Assembly (NCBI GenBank): GCA_010909165.1
Contig: VJWM01000103.1
Location: forward strand, 992,001 to 1,056,000
Direction of reading: 5' to 3'
Origin: Anthoceros angustus
Lineage: Eukaryota; Plantae; Anthocerotophyta
Length of the DNA stretch: 64,000 nt
How positions within the stretch are numbered: the first letter of the stretch is position 1; the number at the start of each line of letters is the position of its first letter. Position numbers and translations under genes: made by a program. Shown piece by piece: positions 49,368 through 62,606 of this stretch. The notes beneath the pieces were generated by a model. The model ran no database searches. It was given only the letters and a program-made list of their open reading frames with translations, and was not told the origin of the DNA.

Positions 49368-50516
49368 ATGCCGCACCGGCAGCTGGTGGGCACGTTCCAT
49401 CCGTGCGGCACCATCGCGCGGTACACGGGGCGCGACCACGACTTCAAGAAATCGCTGCACCTGAGCGCCTGGGACTCGCCGCTATGGCCGCGGGGAGTGG
49501 TCGCGACCAGCCTGCTGGGGAAGGCGCTGCACTCCAACTTCATCCTGCCCGCCGCATCGTACCAGAAGATACAGGACATCGCCAAGCCCGGGCGATTGGA
49601 TCCGGCCCCGGAGAGTTCCAAGGCGGCGGTGGAGAGCGTGGCCATGGGGAGCGGCGATCGCACTGCCAAGATCGGCTGCAACAGCTCCAAGCGCAGCGGG
49701 AGCGGCGACCTGGCCAAGCTGCTGCACGCGCAGAAGCCGGTGGAGAAGGAGGTGGAACGCGGCGTGAAGTTGGCGGACTCGGGCACGGCATGGATCGGAT
49801 GCCCGGCCCCGACGATTGACCGCCCGCCGCCGGGCTGTGAACCGATTCACCGCACGCCTCACTTTCCGCCTGCAGCAGCTGCGTCGACACGGGGAAAGGT
49901 ATGCACCTCGCATGGGAACGCGGCGTTGCCAAAGCATATCGTCGACATGGAAGAACACCCATCCCCCAAGGTGAGCGATTTCGACTCTAATCGCGCACAC
50001 CCAGCATTCCGCAGCTGTTGATTGCAATCCTAGCCTTTTTCTCACGCACATGCAAATGTCGATGCCGATGCCGATGCCGTTGGTGTGGTGCGCATGCAGA
50101 AAGCGCCCAGGCCCCCAGCCAAGAGGATGCCGGTAAGAGTGTCCATGACACTGTCCATGACTGGAAACACGTCCAATGCCCTCCACGAGGACGACTCCGT
50201 GCTGCTCATGGTGCCACAGACCACGCTGGGGGAGCGTGTCATCGAGCTTGCTCTTGCAGCGGACGAGTTCGATGGACCACACAATGTGAAACATGAGGAT
50301 CCCAGCCATTTCGCTCTTCTGAGCATGAGGAAGATCTCTGACAACAAGTTTCGGATCGGCCCTCGTAAGTACGCTGACAAGTTTCATTTTGCGGCAACCA
50401 CTTCTGCACTCATCCCAACTCTGCTCTGGTGCGCATGTTGTGCAGTGTTTGACAGAAGGAAACCGGTTGGCGATGCGGGAACTGGATATTTTGCTTTGTG
50501 CAAAACTACCGACTGA
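49368..50516 (+). CDS. Hypothetical protein (at least 3 exons; true start uncertain)
   Basis: GC3-rich ORF (ARYTGRDHDFKKSLHLSAWDSPLWPRG), phase-compatible GT-AG junctions at ~49970/50100 and ~50367/50446, stop at 50516; no family recognised. Confidence 0.55.
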
Positions 50517-51003
50517 CTTTTCATTGCCCTACTCTTTGCACTCATTCGTCCAATCTTACACTAGAGACTCTCGTATGGACTTATGTAGAAAATTATGTTC
50601 AATATACATATTTTTTATAATCAGTTATGTATAATAGAATCTCATTCATTCTATACTCCATTCACCCAACAATGGCCCTTTCATATCCCAGACTAGGGCA
50701 AGTTTCGGAGTGGCAAGTAGTTTCAAGATGGGTGACCACGTCAAGTTTCAAAGTACCAGGTAGTATCAAGATGAGCGATTCGGGTAGTCGCCTTGACCTC
50801 GGGTAGATGAGACTTCCCATTTTTTTTTCTTACATAAGTCTTCTTTTTTCCCCCAAGGACTATAATATAAGGTCTTTATTTTTACTATATTTTGATAAAT
50901 ATTTTATCTAATAAATCTAATATTATTTTTATATAATATATATATGATTCTCTTCTAAGATTCACATAGCCATGGGAATGTACTAGCATGAGTGGAGAAT
51001 GTA

Positions 51004-51319
51004 CCGTATCCCGAGGGGTGGTTCAACAAAGATAGTATCGAAATAATTATTTTGAAAAAATAGTTCAACATAAATATTTATATTTTTAAAATTTCAAAAT
51101 TTATAAAAATAATTTTATTAATTTTTAATATTTATTAAAATACATATGTATTGACCTCCCCTAAACATGCCCTAATATTCCACACAAACCCTAGTTTCCT
51201 TGTTTTCGGCATCTTTAACTCATGATTTTTTATATATTCAATATTTTAGTAATAATTTTTAGATTTTCAACTTTTATTAATTTTAATTAATTAACAGCGA
51301 ATTACCCCTCAAGGTACGG
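51004..51319. mobile_element. MITE, Tc1/mariner (Stowaway-like) type
   Basis: TA|CCGTATCCCGAGGGGT ... ACCCCTCAAGGTACGG|TA: 13/16 matching TIRs, TA TSD and an AT-rich interior. Confidence 0.75.
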
Positions 51320-51496
51320 TAGTAGCATGAGTAGTTGCATTCTGTGATGACGAGTGCCACCACTGGATTGATTGCCATCATAAAGGGTTATCCGTGCTTT
51401 GAAAATTTCACAGGACTAATTGATACATCATTAATTTTAATTCGCTAAAAAAAGAAATATGTGACAGTTTTGCCACGAAAACCAATGCGAACTCCA

Positions 51497-52630
51497 GTGA
51501 GTGAAGGAGTTGGAGGAGGCACGAGTCCCTCAGAACACCTGGGGTCTCCAGTAGCGAGGCTCGCACCTCCCATTGAGTGAAGGAGTTTAAGGAGCCACGA
51601 GTCCCTTAGAACACCCAGCTGCTGGGGTCTCCAGTAGCGAAGCTCACCCCTCCCTGCATTGAGTAAGGGAGTTGGAGGAGGCACGACTGCCTTTGAACAC
51701 CTGGGGACTCCAGTGGCGAAGCTCGCACCTCCCATTGGGTGACAGAGTTGGAGGAGGCACGAGTCCCTTAGAACACCCAGCTGGGGTCTCCAATAGCGAA
51801 GCTCGCCCCTCCCTGCATTGAGTGAGGGAGTTGGAGGAGGCACGAGTCCCTTGGAACACCTGGGGTCCATTGGGTGAGGGAGTTGGAGGGGGCACGAGTC
51901 CCTTAGAACACCTGGGGTCTCCAGTAGCGATGCTCGCCCCTCCCATTGAGTGAGGGAGTTGGAGGGGGCACGAGACCCTTAGAATACCCGGGGTCTCCAG
52001 TAGCGATGCTCACCCCTCCCATTGAGTGAAGGAGTTGGAGGAGGCACGAGTCCCTTAGAACAGCTGGGGTCTCCAGTAGCGAAGCTCGCCCCTCCCTGCA
52101 TTGAGTGAGGGAGGAGGCACGAGTGCCTTGGAACACCTGGGGGGTCCAGTAGCGAAGCTCGCCCCTCCCATTGGGTGAGAGAGTTGGAGGAGGCACGAGT
52201 CCCTTAGAACACCTGGGGTCTCCAGTACTGGAGCTCGCCCCTCCCTGCATTGAGTGAGGGAGTTGGAGAAGGCACGCGTCCCTTAGAACACCTGGAGTCT
52301 CCAGTAGCGAAGCTCGCCCCTCCCATTGGGTGAGGGAGTTGGAGGGGGCACGAGACCCTTAGAATACCTGGGGTCTCCAGTAGCGATGCTCACCCCTCCC
52401 ATTGAGTGAGGGAGTTGGAGGAGGCACGAGTCCCTTAGAACCCTTGGGGTCTCTAGTAGTGAAAGCTCGCCCCTCCCATTGAGTGAGGAAGTTGGAGGAG
52501 GCACGAGTCCCTTCGAAGACTCGGGGTCTCCAGTAGTGAAGCTCTCCCTTCCCATTGGGTGAGGGAGTTGGAGGAAGCACGAGTCCTTCGGAAGACTTGG
52601 AAACTCCAGTAGGGAAGCTGTCCCTTCCCT
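51497..52630. repeat. 76-80-bp tandem minisatellite, ~14-15 copies
   Basis: Consensus GAGTGAGGGAGTTGGAGGAGGCACGAGTCCCTTAGAACACCTGGGGTCTCCAGTAGCGAAGCTCGCCCCTCCC(TGC)ATT. Confidence 0.95.
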
Positions 52631-52850
52631 CTACTTGGCCTGCCATGCTGCAAATCCGAGCGTAACCTTAGCTCTCCCCTTCCCGCTCATTGTACTGCCA
52701 TGATGCAAATCGGTGCGTCACAATCATCTTAGCTCTCCCTTTCCTGCAACTTGAGCTGCCATGCTGCTAATCCGTGCATCACAATCTTCTTAGCTCTCCC
52801 CTACCCGCAACTTTGGCTGCCATGCAGCAAATCCGTGCGTTACAATCTCC
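52620..52850 (-). repeat. ~60-bp reiterations of the GRAS final codons plus stop codon (coding copy + 3 downstream copies)
   Basis: Minus strand reads IVTHGFAAWQPKLRVGES*, IVMHGLAAWQLKLQERES*, IVTHRFASWQYNEREGES* and VTLGFAAWQAK*. Confidence 0.85.
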
Positions 52851-54745
52851 TTCCAGGCAAGAAGCAGCCAACCCTGGTCCCTTCGAAGGTTCCAACCCTC
52901 GTGATAGTCGTGCATTATGTCCAAGCTGCGTTCAAAGAGGGTTTCATTCAAGGGAAGGAGGTCGAAGCCAGTATTGGCAATAATGCGGTGCCACTGGGTG
53001 TACAGCTCAGATCGCTCTCTTCTCTCCGCTCCTTCACAAGCAATGACATTCATGATGTCACGTCCCAAGAACGACTCCTCCACAACCTGTCTGTTGTAGT
53101 CGTCCCGAGGAGCTGCAGAGTCCAAGAAGTCAAAAAAACAGTGGGTATGCTGGAACACAGGGGGAAGCCGGGACATGAGGAATGGCGCGTTGCCCGCACG
53201 GCTAAGCACGCCGGTCACAAAAACTTTGGGCTTCATCTTCCGGATCCTCTCCAAAATTAGCTTCCTAGGGTTGGACGGCAGCACGAGCTCGTCCAGCACA
53301 TGACGCAGCCGAAACATGCAGTTGACAGCCAGAACCTCGTTGTCTCGAAGAGGCACGTCGGTGATCTGCACTTCCTCCCACTTCCCTGCAATGGGGTGAA
53401 ACTTGAACGGAATCCCCCATTTCTCGGCGATGCCTCTCAACCTAGTCCCAGTTTCCCGCAGTTGGGAATCTGGATGTTTCCCGGGCTGCGGAAACTCGAT
53501 GCCGGTGATGCGCAGCTCCGGAGGGCCTCCGGGCTGGTAAGCCATCGCCTGCATCAGATTAGGCCACTGGTATCCGTTCAGAATGCCGTAATCGACTATG
53601 TGCACCCTCTCCGCTCCTTGAAACGCCTGCAGCAAAACCCCGTTGGCAAACGTGTTCTCCAGCCCTGCCCTAGGATCCTTGGCCAGGTGCGATCGGTAGC
53701 CTTTCTCGCCACGGAATGAGGATGACCGGTCCTCTCTGACGACGGCAGTGTAAAGCTCCGCGCCTGTGCCGTTCAGCTTGGCCACCAACGCCTCCAGGAA
53801 GTAGTGACAGGTGCGTTGGAGGCCGGAGCCACGAGGAGTGGAGAACTCCTGAATCTTGCTCACCAGGCGGAGAGCATCATCCACATCGTTCGCAACCACT
53901 GCCTTGGCGCATTCCTGCAGCATGCCCATCATCTCTTCCACAGACTTCTCGTCTACCGCCGGGCTCGCGGCTTCCAAACCCTCGTCCTGATCAGGGGGCC
54001 CCGCTGCTTGGAGCACATCCGAACTCTGAGGAGTGGAAACGTTCAGCAGTAATGAAGACACCCACTCCTCATCTACATCGTGGCCCTGACGCCGAGGCTC
54101 CGGAGCAGGAGGAGCAGGAGGAGGAGGAGAAGGAGGAGGAGAAGGAGGAGAAGGAGGAGAAGGAGGAGAAGGAGAAGGAGAAGGAGAAGGAGGAGGAGAA
54201 GCAGGAGAAGGAGTCCAAGCACTGAACAAATCTAAACGCGAAGCCACATCTCCGATGATGTCAGCAAACTCGTTGTGCACAACCTGGTAAGCGAGCACAT
54301 TCCGAAGGATGTCTTCCTTCCCGATCCCCTGGTCCCACAGCGCTGTGACCACACTGCTTAGTTGCAAGCAGGAGGGAGCGACTACACTCCGAGCTGCAGC
54401 ATCCACATGCCCGTTCCCAGATGCAGCATCCACATGCCCGTTCCCGGCTGCAGCGTGCAAATGCCAGTTTCCAACTGCAGCATGCACATGCCCGTCCCCG
54501 GCTGCAGCATCCACATGCCCGTCCCCAGCTGCAGCTGCAGCATCCGCATGCCAGACCCCCTCGGCAGCAGAACCACTAGGACTGGAAATCGGCAAACCCG
54601 GGGAAATCGTGAGACCAGGTTCGTGCTCTCGACCACCCGCCTGTCTTGCCTGCGCCGGAGATGCAGCGGTTGCGGATCGTGGCACCTTGCTGATCTGCAA
54701 CAACGCCTCTCGAAGGCGGCGAGACAGCGGAGACTCATCTGCCAT
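52790..54745 (-). CDS. GRAS transcription factor, LISCL (SCL9/14/33-like) subfamily, intronless
   Basis: ECAKAV..STPRGSGLQRTCHYFLEALVAKLNGTG, VHIVD-type RVHIVDYGILNGYQWP, GGPPELRITGIEFPQPG, NCMFRLRHVLDE, VIACEGAERRERSELYTQW and terminal AAW (SAW). Confidence 0.93.
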   Translation of the reverse strand: MADESPLSRRLREALLQISKVPRSATAASPAQARQAGGREHEPGLTISPGLPISSPSGSAAEGVWHADAAAAAGDGHVDAAAGDGHVHAAVGNWHLHAAAGNGHVDAASGNGHVDAAARSVVAPSCLQLSSVVTALWDQGIGKEDILRNVLAYQVVHNEFADIIGDVASRLDLFSAWTPSPASPPPSPSPSPSPPSPPSPPSPPPSPPPPAPPAPEPRRQGHDVDEEWVSSLLLNVSTPQSSDVLQAAGPPDQDEGLEAASPAVDEKSVEEMMGMLQECAKAVVANDVDDALRLVSKIQEFSTPRGSGLQRTCHYFLEALVAKLNGTGAELYTAVVREDRSSSFRGEKGYRSHLAKDPRAGLENTFANGVLLQAFQGAERVHIVDYGILNGYQWPNLMQAMAYQPGGPPELRITGIEFPQPGKHPDSQLRETGTRLRGIAEKWGIPFKFHPIAGKWEEVQITDVPLRDNEVLAVNCMFRLRHVLDELVLPSNPRKLILERIRKMKPKVFVTGVLSRAGNAPFLMSRLPPVFQHTHCFFDFLDSAAPRDDYNRQVVEESFLGRDIMNVIACEGAERRERSELYTQWHRIIANTGFDLLPLNETLFERSLDIMHDYHEGWNLRRDQGWLLLAWKEIVTHGFAAWQPKLRVGES

Positions 54746-55748: not shown

Positions 55749-56508
55749 TACAATCTGCTTACCATGGCAACAGCAATGGCAGCTTGCAAGCATTCTGGTG
55801 TGCCCAGTGCTTTCTCTCGCATCAAGGTTCACAGTAGTGCTAGCCCCACAGCATGTCCACAGGACTCAAAGTACATTTTCGATGATGAATTTGGGTAGGG
55901 AGCTAGCCATATCCCGCCATTCCGTGACCCCTTAGCTTTTTCATATATTTTCGTCCTACAGCTGTCAAGGTCAAGGGTCCCAAACCCACTTACTTGCCTA
56001 CGGACTTCACATTCGAGGCTAAAGATCGCCACGCATTTACACCGGTATATACTTGACGATCCTCAGGCTCGGTTGCCGTCCTGCACAAGCCTTCACAGCC
56101 AGATTGGCACTGTGTCGTTCACCTCCTTCTGCTGGCTGTGCTGTTTGAATTAAGGTTTCCATCGTGCATTCAACTGCAACCCTGCCGTAACAGAATCTCT
56201 TCCCAGGTGGAAAACGAAGGCCTGTACGCCAGTGCAGGGATTCAGTTGTTGCTGCGAGGGGAGAGGCAACAAGATGAGGTGATACGGACGCAGCATGTTG
56301 TTGGGGCACTGTAAGCACAGAACTCCTTTGGGGCTCTTAGGGCTGCAAGCTTGGAGTTCTGGTTTTAGAAAAGTCAGTTCCGAAAGCTGTGGCACTGCTG
56401 AGCACTCGAACTTACAACAGCTGGGTGCTGGTTCCAAGTTCGAGCGCCCTGGAGAAGTTACTGTCGGCCTGTTGGACGGGCGCCTCGGATTCAGGGGAGC
56501 TCTTCGGG

Positions 56509-58895
56509 ATGGAGGCTCTGAAAGCTGCAGGCAATGATGCGGTGCGGCAAGGGAATTATCGATCTGCACTGGATTTGTACAGCCAAGCCATAGCAGCTAT
56601 CGATCCGAGTCAAACTGAGGAGCTTTCCATCTTGCACAGCAATCTATCCTTCGCAAACCTCAAGTTGGGCCAATACGAGGAAGTATGCTGCCAGCTCTAA
56701 TGTTACTTCTAGAAACGTGCGGGCTGCAGCAAAAAGTGCCACCTTGTGTGCAGCGGATGTCGTTGCTCTGAGGTAGTATGCAATTGTTTTGTCACCCAGG
56801 CACTCAATCAAGCCAACAAAGCTGTGGCTGGAAGGAGTAACTGGAGCAAGGTGTGCTTCAGCCTTGCCCCTTAAAAAGAACGTGAAGTAGGGTTGAGAGG
56901 AACGTATCTTGCCTCACGACCAGATGGCTGTTGTGTGTAGGGCTACTTTCGACAGGGAGAGGCTCAGTTCGCTCTCAAAGATTATGCTGCTGCTGAACAT
57001 TCTTTCATGAAAGCTTCTGAACTGGTGCGAGATTTTGACTGCGGCTGCTTCTACGCTGTGACTTCTTTCTCTCCACAGTTTCTGTTTGAATACACTTCTT
57101 TGCTTGTGGCCAGTCTCCAGATGACAACGCAATCAAGCGTCGAATTACTCTGTCACGGGAAGCACAAACTGGTTTCTACTTTCGACAGGTCTGTGGTTGT
57201 CCCCAGGATGTTTATGTTGTTGGAGGTCATGTTACCTGTGATTTTGCAGCCGAGGTTACACAAACTGACAACGGCTCATTCCCTGCTCCTCTTGTTCATA
57301 TTTTTCAGTTGCTGCCAGGGAGAGATTTCTGTCTCTCGCCATCTAATATCATTGAAAGGCAGGTAGGTAAGGTGGAGTTTCTTGGTTTACTGGGCAAGGG
57401 ATTCTGCCTGTGCCGCCTTTCGGATCCAGACATTAATTGTTGCATTTCTTGCTTCACAGATTTTCAGCAGTGCAGAGCAGATGAAGAATTTTGTTTATCT
57501 GCTTGGAGATGCTCGGACACGGGAAGCAGTGGTGGTTGATGCTGCTTGGGATGTTAAGGTGACATACATTTGCTATGAAAGCTGTGATCCGCAATTCATG
57601 ATACAGGGTAATACCTTCTGTAGCTGGCTGTAGGACTGCTTCGCTGTGCAAAAAGTCCCCAAAGTGAAGAGTTGGATGTGTCTCTCAGGGTATCCGAGCT
57701 GTTGCTTCTTCTGACAATATAAAGTTGGTAAGCCCAACTTCCAGTTTGATCTCATTGTCCTTTCATGTGAGCTCTTAAAAAGGGATGAGTGTTGACCTAG
57801 TAATTGACATACTGTCAAAGGTTGGAGCAGTGGTGACACACTATCATTTCGACCATACTGGAGGAACACCACCACCACCGTTTGATGCCCTAGGAATCAA
57901 AGTCCCCGGCATACGAGAACTGGCAGTTGAAGATAAAATCCCTGTACGGGATTCACGTGCTCATCAGACAGTATGCATGTAGTCAGTGGTAAGAATCTTT
58001 TTTTCTGAAGTTAATGTGATTTGCCTGCAGGTGTACATCAATAAACATGATGCAAAAACAGTGATCAGCAACAATTCTGTGCCAGGCGAAATTGTGGTCG
58101 AACTTGATGTACGTCACCCTTGTCCCTTGTCTGATGGTGGGCAGCATCACAGAGTTGATGACTAAACATTGTCTTTACTTCACTGCAATTCTAGGGGCTG
58201 GCTAAAGTTTCTGTCGGGAGTGGATGCTTGACAGTCACAACATGTGCTTTGGCTGATGTGCTGCACTTCACCCCAGTTAACTGGTGTGCATTGAAACAGG
58301 ACTCAGCTACCATCGCCGTTGGCTCTGTCAAGCTTCACTTCATACACACTCCAGGTCATACACCTGGCAGTCAATGTATCCACGTTCCAAGGTTGGTGGT
58401 CTAAAAGTTGAGTAATATCCCTACGATCGACGTCGGATTCAACTGACTGGCACTTGGCTGCTCTTGCAGACCCTCAGATGATATTCTTCTAAGTGGCGAC
58501 ACATTGTTCATTTCCAGGTAATCCTTAAAGCTGCGGACTGTTAAGACTCCATCCCTTCAAGGACCGTCTAATTTGCTTTCTGCCTTTTCTGTCAGTTGTG
58601 GGCGATTGGACTTGCCAGATTGCAATCCGAGAGCTATGTATACAAGCTTGCAGAAGAAGCTAGCCAGCTTACCTGACTCTACGAGGTAAGAACGCAAAGT
58701 GACCTTGTTTATTCATGAAAACTGAAGTTAGACTTGAGGAAACGAGGTTAAGAGATGTTAAGGTTCGCCCGTTCTTCTTGCAGGGTTTATCCTGGTCACG
58801 ACTATGGAGGTCCCTACACGACAATTGGAAACGAGAAGAGAACTGGGTTCTTGAAGCCGATGACCGAGGCCGACTGGATGGGAATGTATCATTAG
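56509..58895 (+). CDS. TPR-repeat + metallo-beta-lactamase-fold (glyoxalase II-like) fusion protein, 12 exons
   Basis: TPR: ALKAAGNDAVRQGNYRSALDLYSQAI, LHSNLSFANLKLGQYEEAL, GYFRQGEAQFALKDYAAAEHSF. MBL: QMKNFVYLLGD, THYHFDH, HTPGHTPGS, SGDTLF, CGRLDLP, VYPGHDY. All joins are GT-AG and keep the frame. Confidence 0.88.
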
Positions 58896-59621
58896 TTGAG
58901 CAATTGAAGTTGAAAATGATGGGAATGGAGATTATGGAGCTAAATTCCCTCTACTGTAAAAAGTGATGACAACTATTGTCTCGACACTACGTATTTCATA
59001 GATATTATTTTCGGTGGAAGGCCAAATCACACAGCAACTGGACATAGTTCCCTCTCGATAACATTTTGATGACAAGTGTTTCGCTTGCCACGGTATGCGC
59101 TGGGGATGATGAGATCTTGGCAACTCTCAATATCCCACAGACTGCCAACCTTTCTTTTCCAGGGCTTGTCGGAGAGCCTGCAATACCAAGTAATTAGCAT
59201 ACTTCAAACAAGCCCATTTCCTAGTCAGCATAGAAATCAATCATCCACCTTTATCCTCTTCCGGTTGATATCGAAGTCCACTGGTCCTATCCTCGATGCA
59301 GACCGATACTCACACAGGGAACGTTCTCCGGGAGGAAACCAGAACTCTACATCATGTACAAGCTGCACAACAAGACCATGAATAATAAGACAACAAAACC
59401 CCACTTATTCATCCAAGTAGCAACTTTCCTTAGCGTACTCACCCCAAGGATGGAACTTTCGTATTCGACGTAGATGTACTCATCTGTCCTTTTCACAATC
59501 CTTGGAGTGAAGTTATCAGGCTTGGCTGCTTGAATCTGTCCACATGACCATGGTATTCAACCGCACTGTTCAACTGGTGTTGCAAGCACAAACCGAGTGG
59601 ACTGCTGTCCCCTGTGGAGAG

Positions 59622-61053: not shown

Positions 61054-62606
<1,553 letters not shown>

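Follow-up and report, generated by a model that had tools for sequence, protein, structure and literature searches.

The enzymes tethered to Hsp70 or Hsp90 by a tetratricopeptide repeat (TPR) clamp set the range of what these chaperones can do to their clients; the PP5 phosphatase, the CHIP ligase and the FKBP isomerases are examples. Among enzymes with a metallo-beta-lactamase (MBL) fold, glyoxalase II, GloC and YcbL hydrolyse thioesters and ETHE1 oxidises persulfides. No paper describing the combination of a TPR clamp with an MBL-fold enzyme, or a TPR-MBL family, was found in the literature searched, nor was any functional study of such a fusion or of the mycobacterial protein Rv0634c. The lack of papers on the family probably reflects its absence from every classical model organism, although its conservation reaches from algae and bryophytes as far as chytrids and haptophytes. 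A gene of this kind is carried on the plus strand, at 56509-58895, of a 64,000-nucleotide (nt) stretch of the genome of the hornwort Anthoceros angustus (contig VJWM01000103.1, positions 992,001 to 1,056,000), referred to here as the window. It is proposed, with moderate confidence, that its product is a two-domain protein, vertically inherited in land plants, in which a chaperone-docking TPR clamp is joined to a metal enzyme of the glyoxalase II/ETHE1 branch that would act on a thiol-linked substrate.

Translation of the three forward frames of 56400-59000, with a check of the splice sites, gave an intact gene with 13 exons, separated by 12 introns, where an earlier note made from the letters of this DNA had counted 12 exons. 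All 12 introns are of the GT..AG type and are 78-191 nt long, and the coding sequence of 1119 nt consists of 372 codons and a stop, running from the ATG at 56509 to the TAG at 58893-58895. An in-frame stop lies at 56338-56340 and 56509 is the first in-frame ATG after it. The peptides quoted in the note are all in frame on the plus strand, namely GFYFRQ/LLPGRDF (exons 4/5), AEQMKNFVYLLGDARTREAVVVDAAWD (exon 6), THYHFDH (exon 8), HTPGHTPGSQC (exon 10), SGDTLF (exon 11), CGRLDLP (exon 12) and VYPGHDY (exon 13).

The gene is real, transcribed and intact. A contig of 1496 nt from the same organism (X1) has no mismatches to the window; it covers 56032-56682 and its record coordinates account for exons 2-12 at the modelled junctions, while its last 11 letters fit the start of exon 13 except for one T that is missing where the contig stops. 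In three related organisms (X2, X16 and X20), with the likeness threshold set at 88%, every one of the 12 intron joints is seen in contigs of 1.8-1.9 kb. The RNA label of these runs is a guess of the index and the splicing argument rests on the absence of introns: since the introns are missing, whereas DNA would keep them, the contigs are processed transcripts, and since TPR and enzyme exons are joined in them both parts lie on one spliced RNA. The possibility that two genes were fused by an artefact of gene prediction was rejected. What the note had read as an intact TPR-MBL gene is upheld by contigs that lack the introns, and the two parts are not separate genes. A separate X1 contig at 58106-58274 (169 nt, depth 4) spans most of intron 9; it comes either from intron retention or from traces of genomic DNA in the run.

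The databases yielded no protein identical to the window product, the nearest being 70-73% identical, and the whole-protein and structural analyses therefore used as proxy an orthologue of 372 amino acids (aa), P0115, which aligns without indels to the exon pieces of the window and is 73% identical to them overall and 81% in the enzyme part. Searches of Pfam and the PDB with single exons gave marginal matches, as expected for pieces. P0115 itself passes the Pfam thresholds for Lactamase_B (PF00753; 70 bits against a cut-off of 22.7) and for TPR_1/TPR_2, and no other family was found in its Pfam scan, HAGH_C included. P0115 was modelled with AlphaFold2 from an alignment of 49 sequences, with a predicted local distance difference test (pLDDT) score of 96 and a predicted template modelling (pTM) score of 0.90; in the model seven helices, forming three TPR repeats and a cap (residues 2-122), run directly into an MBL strand (residues 125-129, FFFRQ). 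Because of these scores the two domains are predicted to form a single rigid unit. The window protein begins with the first TPR helix, with no presequence, and its TPR part is joined to the enzyme domain by a FYFRQLLPGRDF linker. Its membership of the MBL superfamily follows from THYHFDH, HTPGH, GDT and PGH, all of which are in the window exons, and from the fold of P0115 (Z 24-26). The parts of the gene are as follows.

56032..56508, plus strand: 5' leader of at least 477 nt; the X1 contig is unbroken over 56032-56682.
56295-56537, plus strand: upstream open reading frame (ORF) of 80 codons in another frame, overlapping the main ATG at 56509.
56509..56682, plus strand: exon 1, aa 1-58, TPR repeat 1 and first helix of repeat 2, with clamp residues K5, N9 and N45 (Pfam TPR_2 1e-6; alignment of P0115 with Hop TPR1; joint 56682/56800 in 4/4 runs).
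56800..56850, plus strand: exon 2, aa 59-75, TPR repeat 2 (second helix), whose last residues are WSK, K75 being a clamp residue (splice model, transcript contigs, Hop alignment).
56941..57024, plus strand: exon 3, aa 76-103, TPR repeat 3, GYFRQ with clamp residue R79 (Pfam TPR_1 3e-4; transcript contigs; Hop alignment).
57114..57188, plus strand: exon 4, aa 104-128, TPR capping helix followed by GFYFRQ, the first enzyme strand (helix 108-122 and strand 125-129 of the P0115 model).
57309..57362, plus strand: exon 5, aa 129-146, LLPGRDF...IIERQ, common to the bacterial family (sequence comparison).
57460..57558, plus strand: exon 6, aa 147-179, core strands AEQMKNFVYLLGD...VVVDAAWD (N156, Y159, D173, W176 and D177 invariant in the family alignment).
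57689..57727, plus strand: exon 7, aa 180-192 (splice model, transcript contigs).
57821..57943, plus strand: exon 8, aa 193-233, metal motif THYHFDHTGG and then the family-specific insert PPPPFDALGIKVPG (Pfam Lactamase_B 2e-3).
58031..58108, plus strand: exon 9, aa 234-259 (splice model, transcript contigs).
58300..58391, plus strand: exon 10, aa 260-289 and 2 nt, HTPGHTPGSQC with the metal-ligand histidine (Pfam Lactamase_B 0.02).
58470..58517, plus strand: exon 11, SGDTLF, in which the aspartate is a bridging residue or ligand (residue conservation).
58596..58685, plus strand: exon 12, CGRLDLPD, whose Arg/Asp pair corresponds to R163/D165 of human ETHE1 (alignment, conservation).
58784..58895, plus strand: exon 13, VYPGHDYGG with the last metal His and the Tyr equivalent to ETHE1 Y197, the C-terminal helix and the stop TAG (alignment, conservation).

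Q128, the last residue of exon 4, is invariant in the family alignment (A2) and is Q in 126/130 eukaryotic domain sequences. The 80-codon ORF in the long 5' leader may regulate translation.

The best solved natural relatives of the TPR part are SPAG1, TPR1 of Hop/STIP1, RPAP3, PP5, SGT and TOM70, and the TPR of P0115 superposes on that of human SGT with a Z of 20.6 and a root mean square deviation of 1.5 A over 118 residues. Residues K8, N12, N43, K73 and R77 of Hop TPR1, which we take to be the carboxylate clamp that grips the EEVD tail, align with K5, N9, N45, K75 and R79 (HMMER alignment of human Hop with P0115). All five are present in exons 1-3 of the window, and among 49 family members the conservation of N45, K75 and R79 is 90% or more. 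With three repeats and the five residues in register, the part has the look, at the level of sequence, of an EEVD-binding clamp domain. Because all five clamp residues are present and conserved, a partner of the Hsp70/Hsp90 type, as the earlier note had suggested, is the most likely reading.

The enzyme domain retains all seven metal-site positions, namely the H, H, D and H of HxHxDH, the H of HTPGH, the D of GDT and the H of PGH, which are invariant in 130 eukaryotic sequences and kept in at least 79/80 bacterial ones. CGRxD and GHxY, which contain the equivalents of R163, D165 and Y197 of ETHE1, are found in at least 128/130 eukaryotic and at least 79/80 bacterial sequences; these three ETHE1 residues are conserved across all types of persulfide dioxygenase (PDO) (PMC6060420). 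A canonical glyoxalase II (GloB/GLX2) was rejected as an identity for the domain, as four orthologues score only 86-103 bits with the NCBIfam GloB equivalog TIGR03413, against a cut-off of 200.8, and the HAGH_C domain is absent, the protein ending ~30 residues past PGHDY.

The alternative that survives best is that the enzyme is not a hydrolase at all, but a mononuclear-iron PDO resembling ETHE1, which would oxidise glutathione persulfide or the persulfides of clients in the cytosol. When the sequence was compared with solved structures the top matches were PDOs or their close kin, as the following scores show.

9rhq, MBL family protein: 83.5 bits.
8zbd, Beggiatoa persulfide dioxygenase: 80.7 bits.
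2zwr, TTHA1623: 78.7 bits.
4chl, human ETHE1: 73.3 bits.
2xf4, YcbL: 67.0 bits.
1qh3, human GLX2: 64.6 bits.
2gcu, Arabidopsis ETHE1: 58.2 bits.
1xm8, Arabidopsis GLX2-5: 56.8 bits.

PDOs (types I to III) also head the Foldseek list, type I PDOs have a similar N-terminal FRQL strand and a similar xYxYLxGD motif, and in the alignment with 4chl the His/His/Asp iron triad, the Arg-Asp pair and the Tyr that mark PDOs are all kept. However, the VIA-align comparison is a tie, in which the glyoxalase II-type hydrolase YcbL (Z 26.0) stands with the PDOs (25.2-25.7), ETHE1 (24.9) and GLX2 (24.2), and GRxD also occurs in YcbL and TTHA1623. The protein lacks the C-terminal tail with which type I PDOs make a Pro-Lys contact to glutathione, one basic residue (in GxL[RK]P) aligning by eye with ETHE1 R214. 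In addition, none of the ten bacterial loci that were checked has sqr, rhodanese or sulfite-exporter genes adjoining the gene for the bacterial relative, and a look for sulfur-oxidation or glyoxalase partners in bacterial neighbourhoods found nothing conserved. A PDO is on these grounds a distinct possibility that falls short of being probable. The motifs and the fold would suit PDOs as well as thioesterases of the glyoxalase II type, and the family appears to sit between the PDOs and hydrolases of the YcbL/GloC type. It follows that the label of hydrolase, which had been given to the protein from its letters, is not supported as it stood. The accompanying claim that the enzyme is neither GLX2 nor ETHE1 survives in part: identity is 34-44% to the bacterial subfamily described below and 25-27% to E. 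coli GloB and GloC, but the residues common to all PDO types are present and the fold comparison does not separate the groups.

It has also to be considered whether the metal site is a relic and the protein a non-catalytic TPR adaptor or assembly factor, comparable to mt-SAF20, an MBL-fold protein of the complex that assembles the trypanosome mitoribosome. A relationship to mt-SAF20 (6sg9) can be detected (62 bits, Z 20.8) and the literature searched gives no activity for any family member. Against this, the seven metal-site residues and the Arg, Asp and Tyr of the pocket are invariant or nearly so, as would be expected if selection were acting on an active enzyme, which makes a relic very improbable.

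The favoured explanation is that of a clamp-tethered enzyme of the glyoxalase II/ETHE1 branch. Its N-terminal 120 residues would form a clamp of the Hop/SGT/PP5/RPAP3 kind, which most likely docks onto the EEVD-type acidic C-terminal tails of Hsp70 and/or Hsp90, and its C-terminal 250 residues an MBL-fold enzyme with a complete metal site and, most likely, a thiol-linked substrate. The candidate chemistries are thioester hydrolysis, as in glyoxalase II, GloC and YcbL, and persulfide oxidation, as in ETHE1. The protein is probably cytosolic, and the TPR part would carry the chemistry of the enzyme to the chaperone machinery or to its clients. The gene and its splicing, the two domains, the conservation of clamp and metal residues, the kinship with the bacterial family and the spread among taxa are shown by the data, while we infer who the partner among the chaperones is, that the protein is cytosolic, and what its metal and substrate are. 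Several points weigh against it. N9 has been lost in a few family members, and clamp residues are necessary but not sufficient for EEVD binding. Every structural statement rests on the 73%-identical P0115 and not on the window's own protein. Sequence and fold do not settle the chemistry, with GloB scores far below the cut-off on the one hand and the type I PDO tail missing on the other. No binding or enzyme assay on any family member, eukaryotic or bacterial, was found in the literature searched, and the ten bacterial loci have no conserved neighbourhood that hints at a substrate, their flanks differing by phylum.

Bacterial relatives of the enzyme domain were sought in one genome per species with an alignment of the eukaryotic domains as query; of the more than 500 matching loci, 80 were retained. 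The bacterial proteins align from the first residue of the domain, with 35-47% identity, are ~235-245 aa long and are annotated as 'possible glyoxalase II' or 'MBL fold metallo-hydrolase'. They come from Acidobacteriota, Nitrospinota, Methylomirabilota, Planctomycetota, Pseudomonadota, Myxococcota and Actinomycetota. The mycobacterial proteins start ...DRLYFRQLLSGRDFAxGDxIAxQMRNFAYLIGD..., and LYFRQLLxGRDF, xQMxNFxYLIGD and HTPGHTPGSQC are shared with the window, so that the Rv0634c-type signature, which the earlier note had named, proved to be genuine. In six Mycobacterium/Mycolicibacterium loci the gene adjoins tRNA-Thr and tRNA-Met, and at the M. gordonae locus the tRNAs are followed by a 55-aa L33 protein (rpmG) and then a HadA-like ORF. 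We take these surroundings (tRNA-Thr, tRNA-Met, rpmG, hadA) to be the neighbourhood of M. tuberculosis Rv0634c, on which the orthology rests, and the mycobacterial gene is likely the Rv0634c orthologue.

The exon pieces of the window are, over 246 residues, 42-44% identical to proteins of Acidimicrobiales and Thermoanaerobaculia and 34-37% to the mycobacterial proteins; identity to E. coli GloB/GloC is 25-27%. The P0115 enzyme scores 146-197 BLAST bits against the bacterial family, with residues 1-245 aligned, and the enzyme domain 57-73 phmmer bits, a scale that differs from BLAST bits, against the solved plant and human GLX2 and ETHE1 chains. By this similarity over its full length the enzyme domain belongs with the Rv0634c-type subfamily, in the tree as a sister to it and not nested within it. 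ESM Atlas also holds bacterial clusters that combine Lactamase_B and TPR (Aminicenantota and Thermodesulfobacteriota, 330-483 aa); they look like independent fusions, because they are not among the nearest full-length shape matches or the best sequence hits.

The distribution of the family was examined by two word-indexed searches, with a Closterium member and a fern-type member, in which all matches were listed down to 228 and 205 bits respectively. The TPR and the enzyme were found together in streptophyte algae (Closterium, Klebsormidium, Chara, Chlorokybus and Mesostigma), in mosses, liverworts, lycophytes and ferns, in chytrids, an aphelid, Zoopagomycota, Mucoromycota and Glomeromycota, and in ichthyosporeans and haptophytes, to which chlorophytes are added by ESM Atlas clusters. 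No protein of a seed plant, an animal or a member of the Dikarya was among the matches to 228/205 bits, with thousands of such proteomes in the database, and below the eukaryotes the match list goes straight to single-domain bacterial proteins. In a predicted-shape search the full-length matches were likewise eukaryotic only, bacteria matching from residue 93 or 124, and a profile-free search with exon 8 (41 aa) found 106 relatives. The named entries are 'hypothetical' or 'MBL domain-containing' throughout; the fusion is thus already present, unnamed, in databases. The family appears to be lacking in seed plants, animals and higher fungi, and seed plants are read as having lost it. Loss from seed plants had been one of the origins considered in the earlier note, and the angiosperm fusions that would have spoken against it were not among the matches. 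Paralogues occur in several lineages, including the liverwort Calypogeia fissa (P0010), Sphagnum (P0138 and P0148) and Basidiobolus, which has at least five copies (P0041, P0183, P0194, P0196 and P0201); in P0010 the TPR part has been replaced by a short, repeated acidic N-terminus.

A careful maximum-likelihood tree of 60 eukaryotic domains and 42 bacterial proteins, with E. coli GloB and GloC as outgroup, placed the eukaryotes in one clade (100/98) on a long stem. Within it were land plants (99/96), a streptophyte grouping, opisthokonts (100/95) and a clade of algae with haptophytes among them. Bacterial proteins formed a weakly supported sister group (89/78), where an earlier quick tree had shown a bacterial polytomy, and the very long branches of the outgroup leave the root unsure. 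Since a grouping of the eukaryotes with the actinobacterial clade was not rejected by an approximately unbiased (AU) test (p 0.64), the bacterial donor is left undecided by the tree and the test. All 12 introns are common to Marchantia paleacea and eight of the nine introns of Klebsormidium are shared; in the chytrid Spizellomyces two phase-0 introns in the TPR part coincide exactly and a third is off by one base, and the phase-0 intron after exon 2 is common to Marchantia, Klebsormidium and Spizellomyces. Intron positions thus agree with a long residence in eukaryotes. Orthologues of 372-376 aa in ferns, mosses, liverworts and lycophytes have 70-73% identity to the exon pieces over the whole protein and 78-81% over the enzyme. 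From these comparisons the hornwort gene is to be regarded as an ordinary, vertically inherited member of a eukaryotic family that is old, widespread and unstudied.

The idea that the hornwort lineage recently received an actinobacterial glyoxalase II gene by horizontal transfer, with the TPR and introns gained later, was rejected as extremely unlikely. The mycobacterial-type signature is truly shared and the AU test leaves room for an actinobacterial grouping, but streptophytes, chlorophytes, early fungi, ichthyosporeans and haptophytes carry the same fusion, the eukaryotes are a single clade on a long stem, a liverwort, a streptophyte alga and in part a chytrid have introns at the same positions, the gene is 70-81% identical to land-plant orthologues and 34-44% to any bacterial protein, and bacterial contamination of the eukaryotic sequences is excluded by introns and genomic contexts. 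The actinobacterial label that had been attached to the enzyme is correct in so far as the bacterial family includes the mycobacterial protein, but that family spans many phyla and the eukaryotes fall outside all sampled bacteria in the tree. Similarly, the picture of a bacterial hydrolase that acquired a TPR module and introns fails as a local event, while that of an ancient family, absent from seed plants in both large searches, was sustained. A more speculative extension, which we consider rather unlikely, is that the family represents an ancient eukaryotic co-chaperone, possibly dating from near the last eukaryotic common ancestor, that would tether a PDO or thioesterase to Hsp70/Hsp90 and clear persulfide or thioester marks from client cysteines, a repair arm that would have been lost or replaced in seed plants, animals and Dikarya.

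The surroundings of the gene in the window include a convergent minus-strand gene at 58900-59500, with introns at ~59177-59247 and 59363-59442 (CT..AC on the plus strand). Transcript contigs (X1 and its relatives) run from the 3' end of the TPR-MBL gene into this gene, and the 3' ends of the two abut or overlap. A GRAS-family gene at 52793-54745 on the minus strand has a single exon of 651 aa (Pfam GRAS 9e-89), and its N-terminal part has His/Ala/Gly-rich repeats (AAGDGHVDAA...) and a Pro/Ser run. Exons resembling Old Yellow Enzyme / 12-oxophytodienoate reductase lie at 61057-62153 on the minus strand (Pfam Oxidored_FMN 1e-45 and 4e-11). These GRAS and reductase-like neighbours, and a distance of the TPR-MBL gene that is equal to ferns, mosses, liverworts and lycophytes, suit a land plant from none of those four groups. 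Within 50500-52650, AT-rich DNA (GC 0.29-0.34 at 50.5-51.5 kb) gives way to a tandem repeat region, in which minus-strand ORFs repeat a unit like GDPRCSKGLVPPPTPSLNGRGELRYWRPQVF.

The gene points to a further, unstudied class of tethered enzyme, of the glyoxalase II/ETHE1 type, and offers, from the eukaryotic side, a handle on the uncharacterised family of bacterial proteins to which the likely mycobacterial Rv0634c orthologue belongs. In comparison with the TPR-clamp co-chaperones (Hop/Sti1 TPR1, SGT, PP5, RPAP3 and TOM70) the protein has the same three repeats, capping helix and five clamp residues in register, but its catalytic partner is an MBL-fold enzyme. With the persulfide dioxygenases (ETHE1 and PDOs of types I-III; PDB 4chl, 2gcu, 4ysb, 8zbd and 5ve3) it shares the fold (Z ~25), the FRQL start, HxHxDH, TPGHTPG and the equivalents of R163, D165 and Y197. 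It differs from them in its identity of 24-30%, an extra helix after strand 1, an extra insert after HxHxDH and the added TPR, and in having neither the type I C-terminal tail nor a mitochondrial presequence. Glyoxalase II (GloB and human or plant GLX2) and GloC/YcbL have the MBL fold and the same seven metal-site positions, YcbL being the top VIA-align match, whereas the family here falls below the TIGR03413 cut-off, has no HAGH_C by Pfam and is 25-27% identical to E. coli GloB/GloC. Closest are the bacterial Rv0634c-type proteins, whose alignment with the enzyme domain is complete, with the first strand (LYFRQLLxGxD) at one end and the C-terminus at the other, and includes the insert after HxHxDH, HTPGHTPGS, GDTLF..CGRxD and PGHxY; they are without the TPR and have HxHPDHVGG in place of the eukaryotic HYHFDHTGGxPPPPF.

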